From: Haliotis rubra
Taxonomy: Eukaryota
Direction of reading: 5' to 3'
Assembly: GCF_003918875.1 (NCBI RefSeq)
Contig: NW_025765225.1
Coordinates: forward strand, 1,550,001-1,614,000
DNA length: 64,000 nt
A program made the translations under genes and the position numbers. The notes under the pieces were generated by a model, which was not told the DNA's origin, searched no databases, and saw nothing but the letters and a program-made list of their open reading frames with translations. Positions 14,167 to 45,709 of this stretch are shown here, one piece after another (positions within the stretch are counted from its first letter, which is position 1; the number at the start of each line of letters is the position of its first letter).

Positions 14167-14796
14167 ATGAGTGTGTATAACACTGTCAATCTGGCCTATG
14201 TTTCAACGCACAACCCCAAGAATCCGGAACTTTTTCATATCATAAGACAAAATGTTCCAATTTTAAATGCTGATATGAAAATGAATCGAATTATGGCTAA
14301 TGTAACAATGATAAAGAGTAAACGCCAAAGCCGTAACTTAAAACACATATTGACACGTGCCACATTCGACTCATGTATTAAACCTACAGAATTCAGTGTC
14401 TCAAAATGTAAACGGGGAAATTGTGGAACTTGTGAATATATACTTGAAACTTCATGTATAAAGTTCAAAAACAGGAAACAATTATTTCATGTACGCTCTA
14501 ACATGGACTGCTCCGCAAAACATATTATTTATGTTATTATATGCCAAGGGTGTCATGAAGAATACATTGGACAAAAGGAGTGCTTGAGGGACAGAATGCG
14601 CGTCCATAAACAACAGATTAAGGACCCCAAAACAAGGTGCATCCCCTTAAGCGCTCACATTGACAAATGCGCAGCAGGAAAGGAAATAAAATTTAAAATA
14701 TTCCCTTTCTATAAAATGAATACTGCTGACGCCATGCAGCGTAAAGCTAAAGAAAACTTTTTCATCAAAGAATTGTGTCCATCGTTAAATAGGTAA
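14167..14796 (+). mobile_element. Penelope-like element 3' part: linker plus GIY-YIG endonuclease ORF (5'-truncated, no RT)
   Basis: KRQSRNLKHIL, CKRGNCGTC, MDCSAKHIIYVIICQGCHEEYIGQ..LRDRMRVH, RKAKENFFIKELCPSLN. Confidence 0.9.
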
Positions 14797-19327: not shown

Positions 19328-20356
19328 TTGTCAGGTATGTTTTCCGTTGGTATATGGAGAGAGAAAGAGGCTCTGGTGCACCAAGATTTAGTTGACTTAT
19401 CTACGAAAATGCCTGATATAGTTTTAAAATCTAAAGCAGATACTACAGTTATAAAATATAGAAGAGCTCTTACATGTTGGAAAACATTATACCTTACGTC
19501 ATTGATTCAGTCGGGTAAAAGGTCTCCTGTTATTATGGAATCTGTGTACGGTATAAGATGGGCGCACAGAGTGGCGGGTCTACCAGATCCATGTCAACAT
19601 GACCTAATTAAGAACATTAAAGAGGCAGCTAGGAGATGTCACAGTGACCCTGTCAAGAAGAAAGACCGTGTAGATGTTGGTATTTTGGAACGGTTAGTTG
19701 ATAGATTTGGCAAAGAGAATTCTTCTCTTATAGATTTAAGACTTCTGACAATGTCCATTTTTTCATATGCTGGCTTTTTCAGATTTTCTGAAGTTTCCGT
19801 AATTAGGCGTTCTGATATTTCTTTTCATGAAGGATATGTTCGTAATTTCATAGAAAAGAGTAAGACAGACGTGTATAGAGACGGCAGATTTGTTGTGATT
19901 GCGGCGTCTGATTCCCAACTCTGCCCAGTGAATATGCTTCGCCGTTATATGTTATTAGCAAATATCAAAGAAGACTCCCATGAGTTCTTGTTCAGACAAG
20001 TGAATTATTGTAGAAAACAAAAGAAGTATGTTCTCAGAGGCAATAAGCCAATGTCTTACACGAGAACAAGAGAAATTTTCAGGGAAAAATGTAATGAAAT
20101 AGGAATAGATGTGAACAGTTTTGGTTTGCATAGCTTTCGTTCTGGGGGAGCAACAGCCGCTGCGAGTGCAGGTGTACCCGATCCGTTGTTTAAGAGACAT
20201 GGCCGCCGGGTTTCCGACACGGGAAAAGACGGATATGTTAAAGATGACATAAAAGAGTTGTTGGGTGTCACTTGTATGTTAGGCTTGTACGTTTCCTGGG
20301 CTGTAATAAATGATTATCGTTTCTTTGACCTATCTTTTAATTTCGAGCTGCGGTAG
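19328..20356 (+). CDS. Tyrosine recombinase of the DIRS element
   Basis: Catalytic set R (GFFRFSE), K (KSKTD), HxxR (HSFRSGGAT), H (HGRR, usually HGRW), Y (DGYVKD); probable small N-terminal deletion and C-terminal read-through. Confidence 0.85.
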   Translation: MSGMFSVGIWREKEALVHQDLVDLSTKMPDIVLKSKADTTVIKYRRALTCWKTLYLTSLIQSGKRSPVIMESVYGIRWAHRVAGLPDPCQHDLIKNIKEAARRCHSDPVKKKDRVDVGILERLVDRFGKENSSLIDLRLLTMSIFSYAGFFRFSEVSVIRRSDISFHEGYVRNFIEKSKTDVYRDGRFVVIAASDSQLCPVNMLRRYMLLANIKEDSHEFLFRQVNYCRKQKKYVLRGNKPMSYTRTREIFREKCNEIGIDVNSFGLHSFRSGGATAAASAGVPDPLFKRHGRRVSDTGKDGYVKDDIKELLGVTCMLGLYVSWAVINDYRFFDLSFNFELR

Positions 20357-20899
20357 GCATTACCCATGCGAAGTGTTATGTTGTACATAAATAAATAATT
20401 TATGTTCGTTTGATCGAAGAGAATTAGAACATAAAAACCCGTTTCATGTCCGGCCTTCGTGGCTAGGTGATGACCGATCCACAGGGTCACGAGATGGCAG
20501 GTCCGTCGGAACACTAGGTATCCGGTTGAATATGACCATGACGAGGTATCTGACAGACAGCGTGACGTCATATCCGGCTAACAGGATCACATGGTATTGT
20601 AATGTCCGACCAATACGACCATGTGATGTCTGCCCCATATGACAATGTAGTGGCCAATCGACAGGGCCACGAGATAACCGGTCAACCTGACCGTGAGATA
20701 TCCGGCCTCAGCAGACCATGGCCCTTTTAAAGACCCTTTATTGACAAAAACGGAAAATTGTTTGTATATGCCTCCCCCATTCATCTACTTAATGTGTCCA
20801 GTGTGTAAAAAGCAAACCTAAATTCCGTATCTAGGCAGACAAGCAATGCCGTGAAACCAGCCAATAAAACACCAACATGATATTCCAAAGCACGAACTC

Positions 20900-20905
20900 T
20901 TTATT
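20900..20905 (-). terminator. Candidate polyadenylation signal of the EH-like gene
   Basis: AATAAA on the minus strand ~715 nt after the stop codon; another at ~20737-20742. Confidence 0.35.
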
Positions 20906-21620
20906 CCAACTGTTGGAAATATTTTTTGTTTGAAATAAATAAATAAATAATTTATGGAATGTACTAACATCACATGTGACATATAAAGAAATGTATCATT
21001 GCAGATGATATGAAAATAATCGTCGTAAACAGAGTAAACACTGAACCTGATCGCGCTTTGTTATGTATATAAGCATGCCGTGAATGATCCGATTGTTGAC
21101 ATAAGCTTGTGCCGATACTAGAAGGTTCTATCTTCTAAACAATTAAACATCCCAGTGTACAGGGGTAATCCAAGATAATCAAACTTTCTTTTAACACACA
21201 CTTTCATCGGCATCCATCAGAGTGGACAACACCCCAACATGTTCTTTCCATTTATCGAGATATTCAATCATTCCCGATGGTAAATAAGATTTCTCTACCT
21301 CACATTATTGATTTCAATATTCCGACATTTGTACAGTAACTTACGATCCAGATTGGGCAATGACAAACTGTTCAGGTTTTTTCGCGTCCACGTATAGTTG
21401 TGCCATGTGAAAGGACAAGTGGACATTGACTATTTTCGAGGCCATCTTAAACGGACAATTAAGAAAAATAACGCCCATTATTTCAAACACCCCCAATATA
21501 ACAGAATGTCAAAATTGAATGAAATAAATACGCTTGGGAAAAGGGGATGAATGCTTACAAAATAAATACGTTTGGAGGTATAAATAATATTCACATACTA
21601 CAGTCTCAAAGTGTCCTTTT

Positions 21621-21977
21621 TCAACAATTCTTGGGCAACTCCTTCTTCACAAGGCACGTGAATATGCACGAAAGACGATTCAATTGTAGCCCACTTTCGT
21701 CATGTACACACTTTTCGCAACGTTCTTCACAATCTTCTGACGTTACCCGAAATTCTGTACGTTTGTTTGACGGTGCGCTTCCTCTTGTACATTCAGGGTC
21801 GATGGTCCTCCCTTTTGAATCTATGCAGGCTTGGGCACAGGCCTTGCCGTCATACATTTTCTTTCCCCATGACTCCACGCAATTGACACACTCAAACAAA
21901 CAGCCGTCGTACAGCGTGAATCCTTTCACCAGCAAGGGAATGAGGAAAAGTAGTGCGACGGAAAGTATCGGTTTCAT
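21621..21977 (-). CDS. Secreted eclosion-hormone-like neuropeptide precursor with two tandem 6-Cys domains
   Basis: Signal peptide MKPILSVALLFLIPLLVKG. Domain 1 C-x3-C-x2-C-x13-C-x3-C-x11-C with EH-like YDGxxCAxxCIxxKG...PEC. KR at aa 72-73. Domain 2 C-x3-C-x2-C-x13-C-x3-C-x9-C. Splice acceptor TTTCAG 2 nt before the ATG. Confidence 0.85.
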   Translation of the reverse strand: MKPILSVALLFLIPLLVKGFTLYDGCLFECVNCVESWGKKMYDGKACAQACIDSKGRTIDPECTRGSAPSNKRTEFRVTSEDCEERCEKCVHDESGLQLNRLSCIFTCLVKKELPKNC

Positions 21978-21979
21978 AT

Positions 21980-21995
21980 CTGAAACATCAAATTT
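21980..21995 (-). promoter_or_regulatory. 3' splice acceptor of a 5'-UTR intron of the EH-like gene
   Basis: Minus strand AAATTTGATGTTTCAG|ATATGAAA. Confidence 0.65.
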
Positions 21996-22592
21996 TAAAG
22001 TATATGTAAAATATATCTTAATCGAACAGACAATTCTGTAGACGTCTAGAGATGTACTGACGTTTAAAGTGGTTGACTTGAACTTTGTAAGGTCATTGCA
22101 TTGTGAGTCCTTGTTTCTAGGTTAATCTTTTTTTAAAAAAACATCAACAAATCACTGTCATTTTCTTAATGTTTTATACATCAGGCACATCGGGTACATT
22201 ACTGAAGAATCCGGGGACTGAAAGTGGTGGCATCGATGACATTAAGACCCATTTCTATCAGAATACTTGCTTTTACGTCCATTTACTTGCACTAATGTGC
22301 AATTGTAGAGTCCCCAACAACAAACCATCACGGAATCTGACCCGTGATTATCTTCTTTATTAAGTCCGAGTAAATGTAATCAGATCAAACAACCCATCTG
22401 TAACACTAGTTTGCGGAATCACGATCAGCGGAACTACATTTTTTTTTAATCAAATGTGTTACACGTATGGCAATGCAAGACCGCGTGACTGCATCTCAAC
22501 CCTTAGGAACACTTATTACGCAAATATTTCAGCCATACAGTACATACGTGTTAGGTCATCTGAATAAACGATGCATCTTGTTTAGTAATTAA

Positions 22593-23880
22593 CATCTGTG
22601 GGACACGGGCTTTTTATTGGGTACCTTTTATGGTAGTCATCAGCTGGCTAGCCATCAGCAAAGATGTACTTTTCCTGATATAATGGTACAGTTAGCAGCG
22701 ATTAAATCCCTATTAATTATCTTAAGTCTTGTTTTCTAAGACGTTGTGTTACCCATCATGGCTCGTATCATATAATCTAATTTCAATTAGTTTCCCTCGT
22801 ATTCATTGATATATTCTCAGGTCCATATAAGAAAACAGATTTCACTTTTTCATCTTGTTTAGTAATTGGGTGGGGTAGCCTATTGGTTAAAGCGTAATGC
22901 CACAAACTAGGGTGAGATTCCCCACATGGGTACAATGTGTGAAGCCCATTTCTGGTGTCCCCCGCTGTGATAATGCTGAAATATTGTTTTGTAATACAAC
23001 TGTTAATCATACGCTAATGCTAAAGGTATGCCCAAAACGTCTAAAGGTTCTGACTATATAAACTGGGATATCTATTGGCATACTTCTATGAAATTAAGCG
23101 TTCATTCTTCACTACATAAATGTTCAAGATTATCCCATATTTTGTTTAGTGCAGTTAACTTACTAAAGAAGGTTTGATAATTCCCTCGTCCAGACATTAG
23201 TGTTGTCATGTACAGAGTATTGGCTAAGGGCGCCCAGTGTCACATTACTAGGTTAATTCAATACAAACTGATGGCTGTGAAGTCTCATGATTATAATACT
23301 CTCTCACTGTCAACATCGTTCCGCTTTGAATCACGATCCCTCCTTAAGAAAACGGATTATCGATTTTCCTCCGGTCTATGCAATTGTTGACTGCAATCGG
23401 AGACGTTCAAAGATTTTTATATCTGCACCTTCGTGTGTTCTACATGCTCGTCTGACACAGAATGTCATCATTTCATAGGCGTCACATCGAGAACTTGATT
23501 ACGGGTATTGTTTTGGCATTCACTTGCTACCTAACGATGGTGATTGGAGGTACATATACCTATTTTCAATATGTACGTGGAATGTATATAATCTGGTACA
23601 CAACTGAGTCAATGCCTGCCCAACTGATCCATCTGTGGGACGCGGGCATTTTATGGTAGTCATCAGCTGGCTAGCCATTAGCAAACATGTACTTTTCTTG
23701 ATGTAATGGTAGAGTTAGGAGCAGTTAAAATCCTATCAATTATATTAAGTCTTGTTTTCCAAGACGTAGTGTTACCTATCATGGCTCGTATATTATTCGA
23801 ATCTGTTTTCAATTAGTTTCCATCGTATTCAATGATTTAATCTGAGGTCCATAAAAAAGAAAACTGAATTCACTTTTCCT
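22593..23880. repeat. ~260-bp direct duplication (~22593-22852 and ~23630-23880)
   Basis: CATCTGTGGGAC.CGGGC...TTTTATGGTAGTCATCAGCTGGCTAGCC...TTCACTTTT occurs twice. Confidence 0.9.
22868..22987 (+). mobile_element. SINE family A, diverged
   Basis: GGTGGGGTAGCCTATTGGTTAAAGCG...CCCACATGGGTACAATGTGTGAAGCCCATTTCTGG. Confidence 0.8.
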
Positions 23881-24720: not shown

Positions 24721-24893
24721 GGGGCGGTGGGGGTAGCCTAGTCGTTAAAGCGTTCGCTCGTCACACCGAAAGCCCGGGTTCGGTTCCCCTCATGGATACA
24801 ATGTGTAAAGCCCATATTTGGTGTCCCCCGTCGTGATATTGGTGGAATATTGCTAAAAGCGGCGTAAACCTAAACTCACTCACTCACTCACTC
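24721..24893 (+). mobile_element. SINE family A
   Basis: Full consensus match with (ACTC)n tail. Confidence 0.9.
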
Positions 24894-37864: not shown

Positions 37865-38065
37865 NNNNNNNNNNNNNNNNNNNNNNNNNNNNNNNNNNNN
37901 NNNNNNNNNNNNNNNNNNNNNNNNNNNNNNNNNNNNNNNNNNNNNNNNNNNNNNNNNNNNNNNNNNNNNNNNNNNNNNNNNNNNNNNNNNNNNNNNNNNN
38001 NNNNNNNNNNNNNNNNNNNNNNNNNNNNNNNNNNNNNNNNNNNNNNNNNNNNNNNNNNNNNNNNN
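37865..38065. other. Assembly gap (N run)
   Basis: ~200 N. Confidence 1.
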
Positions 38066-44336: not shown

Positions 44337-45709
44337 TACTCTCCCAAAAAGGAAACACATATAGGAATTTCAAGTGTATTTTTATGATTATTTTGAAACA
44401 TCTTGTAGGCTTTATGAATCAATGAAATATAGCGAAATTGCACACTGGGAATGCAATTTCGCTATATCAACTCGACCGATGAAAGTCAGTTTGAGTGTCA
44501 CATGGAGACGTGTGGTGGCGCTGAAGTCAATACCTCGTGTGACCACCGTGGGCATCCAGAACTGCATGGCATCGCCTTGGCATCGAACGAATAAGTCTCA
44601 GAATCTCGTGTTGCCCAATCGCAGCCCACTCTGCCTGTAGTGCCTGTGCGAGTTGCTGAAGTGTCTGGGGCTGAGGGTTACGGCGTCGCACCCGTCTGTC
44701 CAGGGCATCCAACAGATGTTCGATCGGGTTTAAGTCCGGTGATCTTGAGGGCCAGGGGAGCACATTGATGTTGTGGTTCTGGAGGAAGTCTCTAGTGTGA
44801 CGTGCTGTGTGGGGCCTGGCATTGTCCTGTTGAAACAACTCCCTCTGGCGATCAATGATTGGACGGAGGTGTGGGCGTAGGATTTCGTCACAGTACCGTT
44901 GAGCTATCAGGTTGCCCTGGATCATCACCAAATCACTTCTCCTACCGCAGGTGATCGCTCCCCACATCATAACACTGCCCCAGCCGAATCTGTCCACCTG
45001 GGGAACGCAAGCGTCGGCGAAATGTTCACGTCGACGTCTGTACACCCGCATTCTTCCATCGCGTCGTTCCAGTAGAAATCGTGATTCATCACTGAACCAG
45101 ATTCTACGCCAATTCGGTAGGTTCCAGGCCTGAACGTTGGTGCACCATTGAACTCGATGTCGACGATGTCGTTGTCGAAGCACAGGGCCAAAATAAGGTC
45201 TTCTGGCACGTTAACCAGCCTCTCTCAACCTTTTCCTGACGGTCTGTGCAGACAGCCTCCTTAATCCGGGTATTTGTCGAGCGGTACTGGTCGCCGTAGC
45301 ATTCATGCGTCCGGCAAGTGCACGTTGAGACTGGCCAGCTTCAAGCAAACCAATGGCGATATGTCGGTTGGCTTCCCTTAGACGTGGCATTTTGCGTTCG
45401 TCAACAATATTCCAAATATAGTGAATAATCGACAGACAGCGATCAACCTTTTATACCCATCATTGAGACTATCTGATCCCCAACTTTCACGTGCATTGCA
45501 TGTGAATTGTGTGTTCTGTGACACTACACGCCGAAAGTGAAAATCATGTTGTTAAATACGGGTATTTTACGGATGGTGCGTTTTGTTTCAAAACATAAAC
45601 ACCATAGGACTCATAAACAGAGCAAAACCTTTTGTAAAATGAATCACGTTTTATTTCATTGCTACATGACATTGCTATTTTCGTGATGCGTTTCTTTTTT
45701 GGGAGAGTA
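44337..45709 (-). mobile_element. Tc1-family (DD34E) transposon with both TIRs and TA TSD
   Basis: TA|TACTCTCCCAAAAAGGAAAC ... GTTTCTTTTTTGGGAGAGTA|TA. Confidence 0.95.
44527..45390 (-). pseudogene. Tc1 transposase with premature stop and in-frame N-terminal deletion
   Basis: ATG at 45390: MPRLREANRHIAIGLLEAG...; TAA at 45211-45213; catalytic WFSDESRF, QQDNARPH, SPDLNPIEH with 34-aa D-E spacing. Confidence 0.9.

Follow-up and report, generated by a model that had tools for sequence, protein, structure and literature searches.

The window analysed here, the whole stretch of 64,000 nucleotides from Haliotis rubra, carries what is with a probability of about 0.7 a single-copy, transcribed gastropod gene for a secreted prohormone of the eclosion hormone (EH) family, in which two tandem six-cysteine domains would be separated by a cut at a Lys-Arg (KR) site to give the peptides EH1 and EH2. 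The two-domain layout as such is inherited and no local novelty, as judged from the homologous sequences, and a two-domain EH precursor is already known from the oyster Crassostrea gigas (Réalis-Doyelle et al., 2021, Mar Drugs 19:452, PMC8398477). What is new is modest, namely a gastropod representative whose second domain is strongly degenerate and stops at its last cysteine, a form absent from the literature and data examined. The features of the gene and of its surroundings are given in Table 1.

Table 1. Positions of the EH-like gene, its predicted products and neighbouring features within the window.
Feature	Position	Strand	Remarks
EH-like precursor, coding sequence	21621..21977	-	118 aa, ATG to stop, one exon; ORF list and translation, Pfam Eclosion
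Stop codon of the precursor	21621-21623	-	counted within the coding sequence
Predicted signal peptide, aa 1-19	21921..21977	-	hydrophobic core, V at -3, G at -1; heuristic
Predicted peptide 1 (EH1), aa 20-71	21765..21920	-	canonical EH-type six-Cys domain plus 8-residue tail
Dibasic K72-R73, presumed prohormone-convertase site	21759..21764	-	RKR in the orthologue; dibasic in homologue linkers
Predicted peptide 2 (EH2), aa 74-118	21624..21758	-	degenerate EH-type six-Cys domain, last Cys is the protein end
TTTCAG, inferred splice acceptor	21980..21985	-	2 nt upstream of the ATG; contig matches end at 21984
3' UTR, about 730 nt	20891..21620	-	transcript-like contigs reach 20891, 20962 and 21047
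AATAAA	20900-20905	-	shortly before the farthest contig end
342-aa ORF with tyrosine-recombinase (Phage_integrase) domain	19328-20356	+	32.7 bits, cut-off 27.1
ORF with DDE_3 transposase domain	44527-45183	-	55.7 bits
ORF with sub-threshold GIY-YIG match	14167-14796	+	21.2 bits, cut-off 22.6
Run of 201 N	37865-38065

The translated precursor contains 12 cysteines, six of them at residues 26, 30, 33, 47, 51 and 63 and the other six at residues 83, 87, 90, 104, 108 and 118. Block 1 has the spacing C-x3-C-x2-C-x13-C-x3-C-x11-C and block 2 the spacing C-x3-C-x2-C-x13-C-x3-C-x9-C; the first five cysteines are equally spaced in both (3, 2, 13, 3) and the last loop has 11 versus 9 residues. KR occurs a single time, at residues 72-73, and the two KK pairs at 39-40 and 111-112 fall inside the disulfide domains. 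The original prediction, which was made from the letters alone, had named an intact 118-aa ORF with 12 cysteines in two blocks of six and one KR at 72-73, and every countable detail of it is right. Its coordinates also hold, with the minus strand to be added. The hydrophobic signal peptide of 19 aa that it had proposed agrees with a mean Kyte-Doolittle value of 3.0 for residues 4-17 and with a putative cleavage after G19, which fits the -3/-1 rule by a heuristic and not by a dedicated predictor. Hydrophobic N-termini are likewise present in the 23 aligned two-domain homologues described below. On the plus strand a 164-aa ORF (21547-22041) lies antisense over the entire EH coding exon, and nothing was seen in it beyond a mechanical ORF.

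The closest orthologue comes from a public sequencing run. It also has 118 aa, is 88% identical and keeps the 12 cysteines as well as the dibasic site. The contig that encodes it matches the window collinearly for 1.7 kb, with 74% of the DNA identical, and therefore represents genomic DNA of a related species. In a Nei-Gojobori comparison with this orthologue dS was 0.36 and dN/dS was 0.16 overall; taken separately, domain 1 gave a dN/dS of 0.10, domain 2 one of 0.07 and the linker one of 0.18. Between these two abalone-like species no part of the precursor is more constrained than domain 2, and the values point to purifying selection on both domains. The ORF can be regarded as more than a chance product, because an orthologue of equal length retains all cysteines and the KR site at such a low dN/dS.

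Pfam Eclosion (PF04736) is the sole family matched by the precursor. Domain 1 scores 29 bits within the full protein and 31 bits alone (E 2e-7), which is above the curated gathering score of 25 bits, and the likeness to EH beyond the cysteines, at first aligned by eye, is confirmed in this way. The residues G38, G56 and D60 of domain 1 fall on invariant or nearly invariant columns of the 23 aligned homologues, and its spacing of 3, 2, 13, 3 and 11 matches most of the non-arthropod homologues. Domain 1 shares with insect eclosion hormone (PF04736; Manduca, Drosophila) the order of the six cysteines and the aromatic-x-G and K/R-G motifs. However, arthropod EH has one domain with the spacing 3, 2, 12, 3, 10 in the part of the published sequences available here, whereas the abalone precursor has two, with loops of 13/11 and 13/9 residues. 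The abalone, unlike the insect hosts of EH, does not moult. A non-moulting host had in fact been proposed from the sequence, and this is borne out by a mollusc whose nearest named second domains are those of gastropods.

When all six frames of the complete 1.38-Gb assembly (1,378,282,171 bases in 2,855 contigs) were searched with the Eclosion HMM, the EH locus alone was found above the cut-off, with 30.3 bits. Since the HMM finds no other such locus in the assembly, the EH gene appears to be single-copy. A sub-threshold Eclosion match elsewhere in the genome (23 bits) lies in a repetitive stretch with a stop codon and was judged to be a chance match. Searches with the protein as query gave weak matches, and the best of these (E 0.024, contig 1), which was considered as a paralogue candidate, turned out to be a non-EH ORF. 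When the genome was searched with P0028, a homologue with an extra cysteine pair (CC type, see below), the EH locus was found and no second copy of the CC type. A look-up of contigs that encode the window's own protein gave none on record.

A short, disulfide-rich protein that is predicted to be secreted might also be a cysteine-rich peptide of defence or of a toxin-like kind instead of a hormone, and this has to be considered. An EH-like peptide is known from a wasp venom, and in the oyster most expression of the homologue was found in female gonad, mantle and digestive gland and not in ganglia (PMC8398477). However, Eclosion is the only family matched, the match is above the cut-off, and the gene seems to be present once and is under strong purifying selection. 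Toxin and antimicrobial families are typically fast-evolving and multigene. No better match to a toxin or defensin family, which the original prediction had named as evidence against itself, was found by Pfam or by structure: Foldseek of the two-domain model against the PDB returned nothing at E <= 0.001 and hence no toxin or defensin fold, and no relevant entry came out of a profile search of the PDB sequences. To date, an EH structure does not seem to have been solved. We consider a defence or toxin-like function very improbable and favour a hormone precursor of the EH family.

Evidence for transcription was obtained from three small contig sets of a sister species (about 98% identical), which have 35-65 million letters each, are transcriptome-sized and are by our guess of RNA origin. 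Compared with a stretch of 5,901 letters, they match only from 20891, 20962 or 21047 to 21966 or 21984 and match nothing else unique in these 5.9 kb. A genome-sized run of the same sister species covers the whole 5.9 kb evenly. Two contigs diverge past 21984 with 52 and 106 extra bases, and these bases were not found on the stretch. We infer a 3' splice site at 21980/21979 with a 5' UTR exon elsewhere, because the contigs leave the genome at 21984 and TTTCAG stands directly before AT-ATG. The coding differences listed for the sister species are three synonymous changes and N71S. Transcription of the EH gene is well supported by these transcript-like contigs, which cover 20891-21984.

An exhaustive HMMER search of 1.84 billion representatives returned 43 homologues; in word-indexed searches one match was obtained with the protein and six with the alignment. 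The named homologues are all annotated as hypothetical or uncharacterised. Two or more EH-type six-cysteine domains are present in 28 of the 43, three of them in one case, and all 12 cysteines are invariant among the 23 two-domain homologues that were aligned. The bivalve members come from Pinctada imbricata, Mya arenaria, Ruditapes philippinarum, Potamilus streckersoni and Mytilus galloprovincialis (two-domain E-values 1.3e-13 for Pinctada, 7.6e-10 for Mya, 4.5e-9 for Ruditapes and 2.4e-8 for Potamilus) and the gastropod members from Plakobranchus ocellatus (GFO34716.1) and Nucella lapillus (KAL8607411.1). Further members belong to the annelid Owenia fusiformis, the priapulid Priapulus caudatus and the sea anemone Actinia tenebrosa, which has the three domains. 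The survey shows that precursors from bivalves, gastropods, an annelid and a priapulid usually have two predicted EH domains, so the tandem layout, whose conservation the original prediction had left to be checked, is widely kept.

Some homologues depart from this arrangement. In P0019, P0027, P0039 (Priapulus caudatus) and P0042 the order is reversed, with a degenerate six-cysteine domain first and the canonical EH domain last. The linker of these priapulid-type precursors is acidic, 101-108 residues long and contains several dibasic sites, and each of the two domains forms its own strongly supported clade. The Actinia protein (P0017, XP_031568667.1) has six cysteines in each of its EH-type domains, and dibasic sites are lacking between these. 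De Oliveira et al. (2019, eLife 8:e46113, PMC6660194), in contrast, state that EH-like ligands of cnidarians possess five of the six cysteines only. P0015, P0028 and P0030 are single-domain proteins with an extra cysteine adjoining Cys5 (C-x2-CC) and a long C-terminal tail that ends in a cysteine; over 55 residues, this group shares 49% identity with domain 1 of the abalone.

The assignment of domain 2 is less direct. Across the family as a whole, the second module is clearly identified as EH by its profile: the non-gastropod domain 2 profile matches the domain 1 profile with 99.1% probability (E 1e-18), and 12 of 30 second domains pass Pfam Eclosion alone at E <= 0.01. The gastropod second domains (abalone, its orthologue, Plakobranchus, Nucella and three unnamed sequences) are a distinct degenerate form. 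The six cysteines are kept across the gastropods, while the aromatic-x-G, G and D positions, which vary little or not at all in other EH domains, are gone, the last loop has 9 residues and the protein ends at the last cysteine. That domain 2 retains the cysteine scaffold and has lost the EH residues had been claimed from the abalone sequence, and this proved correct for [FY]xG, G and D. When the domains were compared separately with Pfam Eclosion, only the first was recognised; domain 2 alone gave no match at E <= 0.01, and the same was found for all gastropod-type second domains. A pairwise BLASTP of domain 1 and domain 2 was uninformative (E 0.17, 22% identity over the matched stretch).

Profile comparison was more telling. 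By hhalign the gastropod domain 2 profile matches the profile of the EH domain (domain 1) with 83.6% probability and E 8e-6 over 36 columns in register, and the match to the other second domains is weaker (60.5%, E 8e-5). In a domain tree built on 42 columns the gastropod second domains form one supported clade (95/94), in which the second domains of Plakobranchus and Nucella cluster with that of the abalone and the abalone pair sits on a very long branch; most other forks stay open. An AlphaFold2 model based on the 23 homologues shows helix(CxxxCxxC)-loop-helix(CxxxC) in both halves, with a mean pLDDT of 75 and block values of mostly 78-87 (68 in one block of domain 2). A search of ESM Atlas features for domain 2 gave no usable match. 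Because of the cysteine register, the profile comparison and the position in the precursor, we conclude that domain 2 is a diverged EH module that was inherited with the gene and not a fresh duplication. The intragenic duplication proposed earlier thus stands insofar as domain 2 is a degenerate copy in register with the EH profile; the duplication is, however, old and widespread and not peculiar to this gene.

If domain 2 is so degenerate, EH1 could be the sole hormone and domain 2 a by-product or an aid in folding or sorting, comparable to the precursor-related peptides of the CHH family. The loss of the aromatic-x-G, G and D residues, the missing Pfam match and the very long branch of the abalone domain even among gastropod second domains would agree with this. 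By-product peptides usually evolve faster than their hormone, whereas domain 2 with its dN/dS of 0.07 is the most constrained part of the precursor and its six cysteines are kept in all gastropods compared. We therefore regard a domain 2 without signalling function as quite unlikely and keep to two predicted peptides. A prediction of the EH1 and EH2 complex reached a score of 0.08, which weighs neither way on a heterodimer.

The second question concerns the linker. A dibasic site is found in the first linker of 27 of the 28 multi-domain homologues, mostly 5-10 residues after Cys6 of domain 1, and the 88% identical orthologue carries RKR at the KR position while the adjoining linker residues differ. 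The inter-domain linker itself ranges from 13 to 108 residues among the multi-domain homologues and has 19 in the abalone. Cleavage at KR is favoured, because the dibasic position is conserved while the length of the linker varies freely. A precursor that stays uncut at KR, so that one secreted two-domain protein acts with both modules jointly on one receptor, would find some support in the Actinia homologue with its three domains and linkers without dibasic site, in one protobranch bivalve sequence in the available part of the PMC6660194 data that has no obvious dibasic site between the domains, and in the oyster, where an intact EH peptide was not detected by mass spectrometry (PMC8398477). 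However, the dibasic site recurs at a mostly equal distance from Cys6 and is kept in the orthologue amid changing residues, the AlphaFold2 model (pTM 0.42) shows no confident packing between the halves, and the range of linker lengths argues against a fixed inter-domain geometry. An uncut precursor is therefore unlikely in our opinion, and two separate peptides are the preferred reading of the KR site.

The processing of the precursor can be pictured as follows. The signal peptide would be taken off after G19, and each domain would fold oxidatively into a helix-loop-helix held by three predicted disulfides. A prohormone convertase would then cut at K72-R73 and a carboxypeptidase would trim the basic residues. 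The predicted products are EH1 with residues 20-71 (52 aa, about 5.66 kDa) and EH2 with residues 74-118 (45 aa, about 5.23 kDa). The homology with the insect hormone suggests that EH1 most likely signals through a membrane guanylyl cyclase, with a rise in cGMP; receptor and physiological role are presumed on this analogy. EH2 would be a much-diverged but strongly constrained copy. The link between EH and a guanylyl cyclase receptor is established only in insects, and orthologues of the EH receptor are reported in molluscs (PMC6660194).

The layout, which the original prediction could not place, had already been published for Crassostrea gigas (PMC8398477) and is contained without comment in the available portion of the PMC6660194 data. 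Like the abalone precursor, where the signal peptide is a prediction, the oyster precursor Cragi-EH has a signal peptide and two six-cysteine EH-type ligands with a dibasic site between them. Ligands 1 and 2 are 24% identical in Cragi-EH, compared with 22% over the BLASTP stretch in the abalone. Mass spectrometry in the oyster yielded one EH1 fragment only, which was possibly non-specific according to the authors (PMC8398477), and this 13-residue fragment of Cragi-EH occurs in none of the 43 homologues. The abalone gene may be orthologous to Cragi-EH, as suggested by way of the other bivalve homologues. In these (Pinctada, Mya, Ruditapes, Potamilus, Mytilus) domain 2 mostly keeps the G and D residues and a C-terminal tail, whereas in abalone domain 2 G and D are lost and the protein ends at the last cysteine.

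Two-domain EH-like sequences are also present in Figure 2-source data 3 of de Oliveira et al. (PMC6660194). In the portion of these data available here they come from the bivalves Ennucula, Nucula, Pinctada fucata and Dreissena, the scaphopod Gadila and the nemertean Lineus, and like the abalone protein they show the tandem layout, most of them with KR between the domains. The cephalopod EH-like forms in the same portion are single-domain, and among its molluscan entries gastropods (Aplysia, Lottia) appear only as a separate single-domain group with eight cysteines. A gastropod two-domain form with a degenerate second domain is absent among these molluscan entries, and no comment on the tandem layout was found in the available main text. 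In a paper on abalone ganglion neuropeptides "eclosion hormone" is not mentioned.

Close counterparts of the abalone protein are those of Plakobranchus ocellatus and Nucella lapillus. In both, a canonical domain 1 is followed by a dibasic site and by a degenerate domain 2, which closes with C-x9-C and has its last cysteine as the C-terminus. However, a PDF...MDAH.C.[FY]TC-like motif in their domain 2 is largely lost in the abalone, and the linker of Nucella has 70 residues versus 19 in the abalone.

Traces of mobile DNA surround the gene. The recombinase ORF lies 1.3 kb downstream of the EH gene, in DNA that is over-represented 10-60 times in the genome-sized run, and is therefore probably a mobile element of the Crypton or DIRS type. 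The ORFs with DDE_3 and GIY-YIG matches are transposon debris around the EH gene. Two short segments (22916-22988 and 24817-24892) reach a depth of thousands to millions in every run, compared with about 60 for unique DNA. They are linked to each other by hundreds of joints, and loose ends flanking them resemble the T-arm of a tRNA (GGTTCGA.TCCC). Both seem to be copies of a tRNA-derived SINE that is very abundant, and ARAGORN detected no tRNA gene at either of them.

Peptides of the ecdysis pathway in animals that never moult have been taken as a sign of an older function in transitions of the life cycle, and the content of a mollusc EH gene is needed before ligand-receptor tests. It is possible, although we put this forward only tentatively, that the tandem precursor is the ancestral protostome state of EH, or even older, and that EH2 acts as a further hormone, either through a receptor of its own or as a modulator, and was remodelled in gastropods to a distinct, C-terminally truncated ligand. 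The prevalence of two domains overturns nothing but makes the question of a separate EH2 receptor concrete. For the abalone, a gastropod used in aquaculture, an EH gene is now defined whose two predicted peptides are open to synthesis and assay. If the tandem precursor is indeed ancestral and EH2 a hormone in its own right, EH signalling outside the arthropods would be an overlooked two-ligand system.
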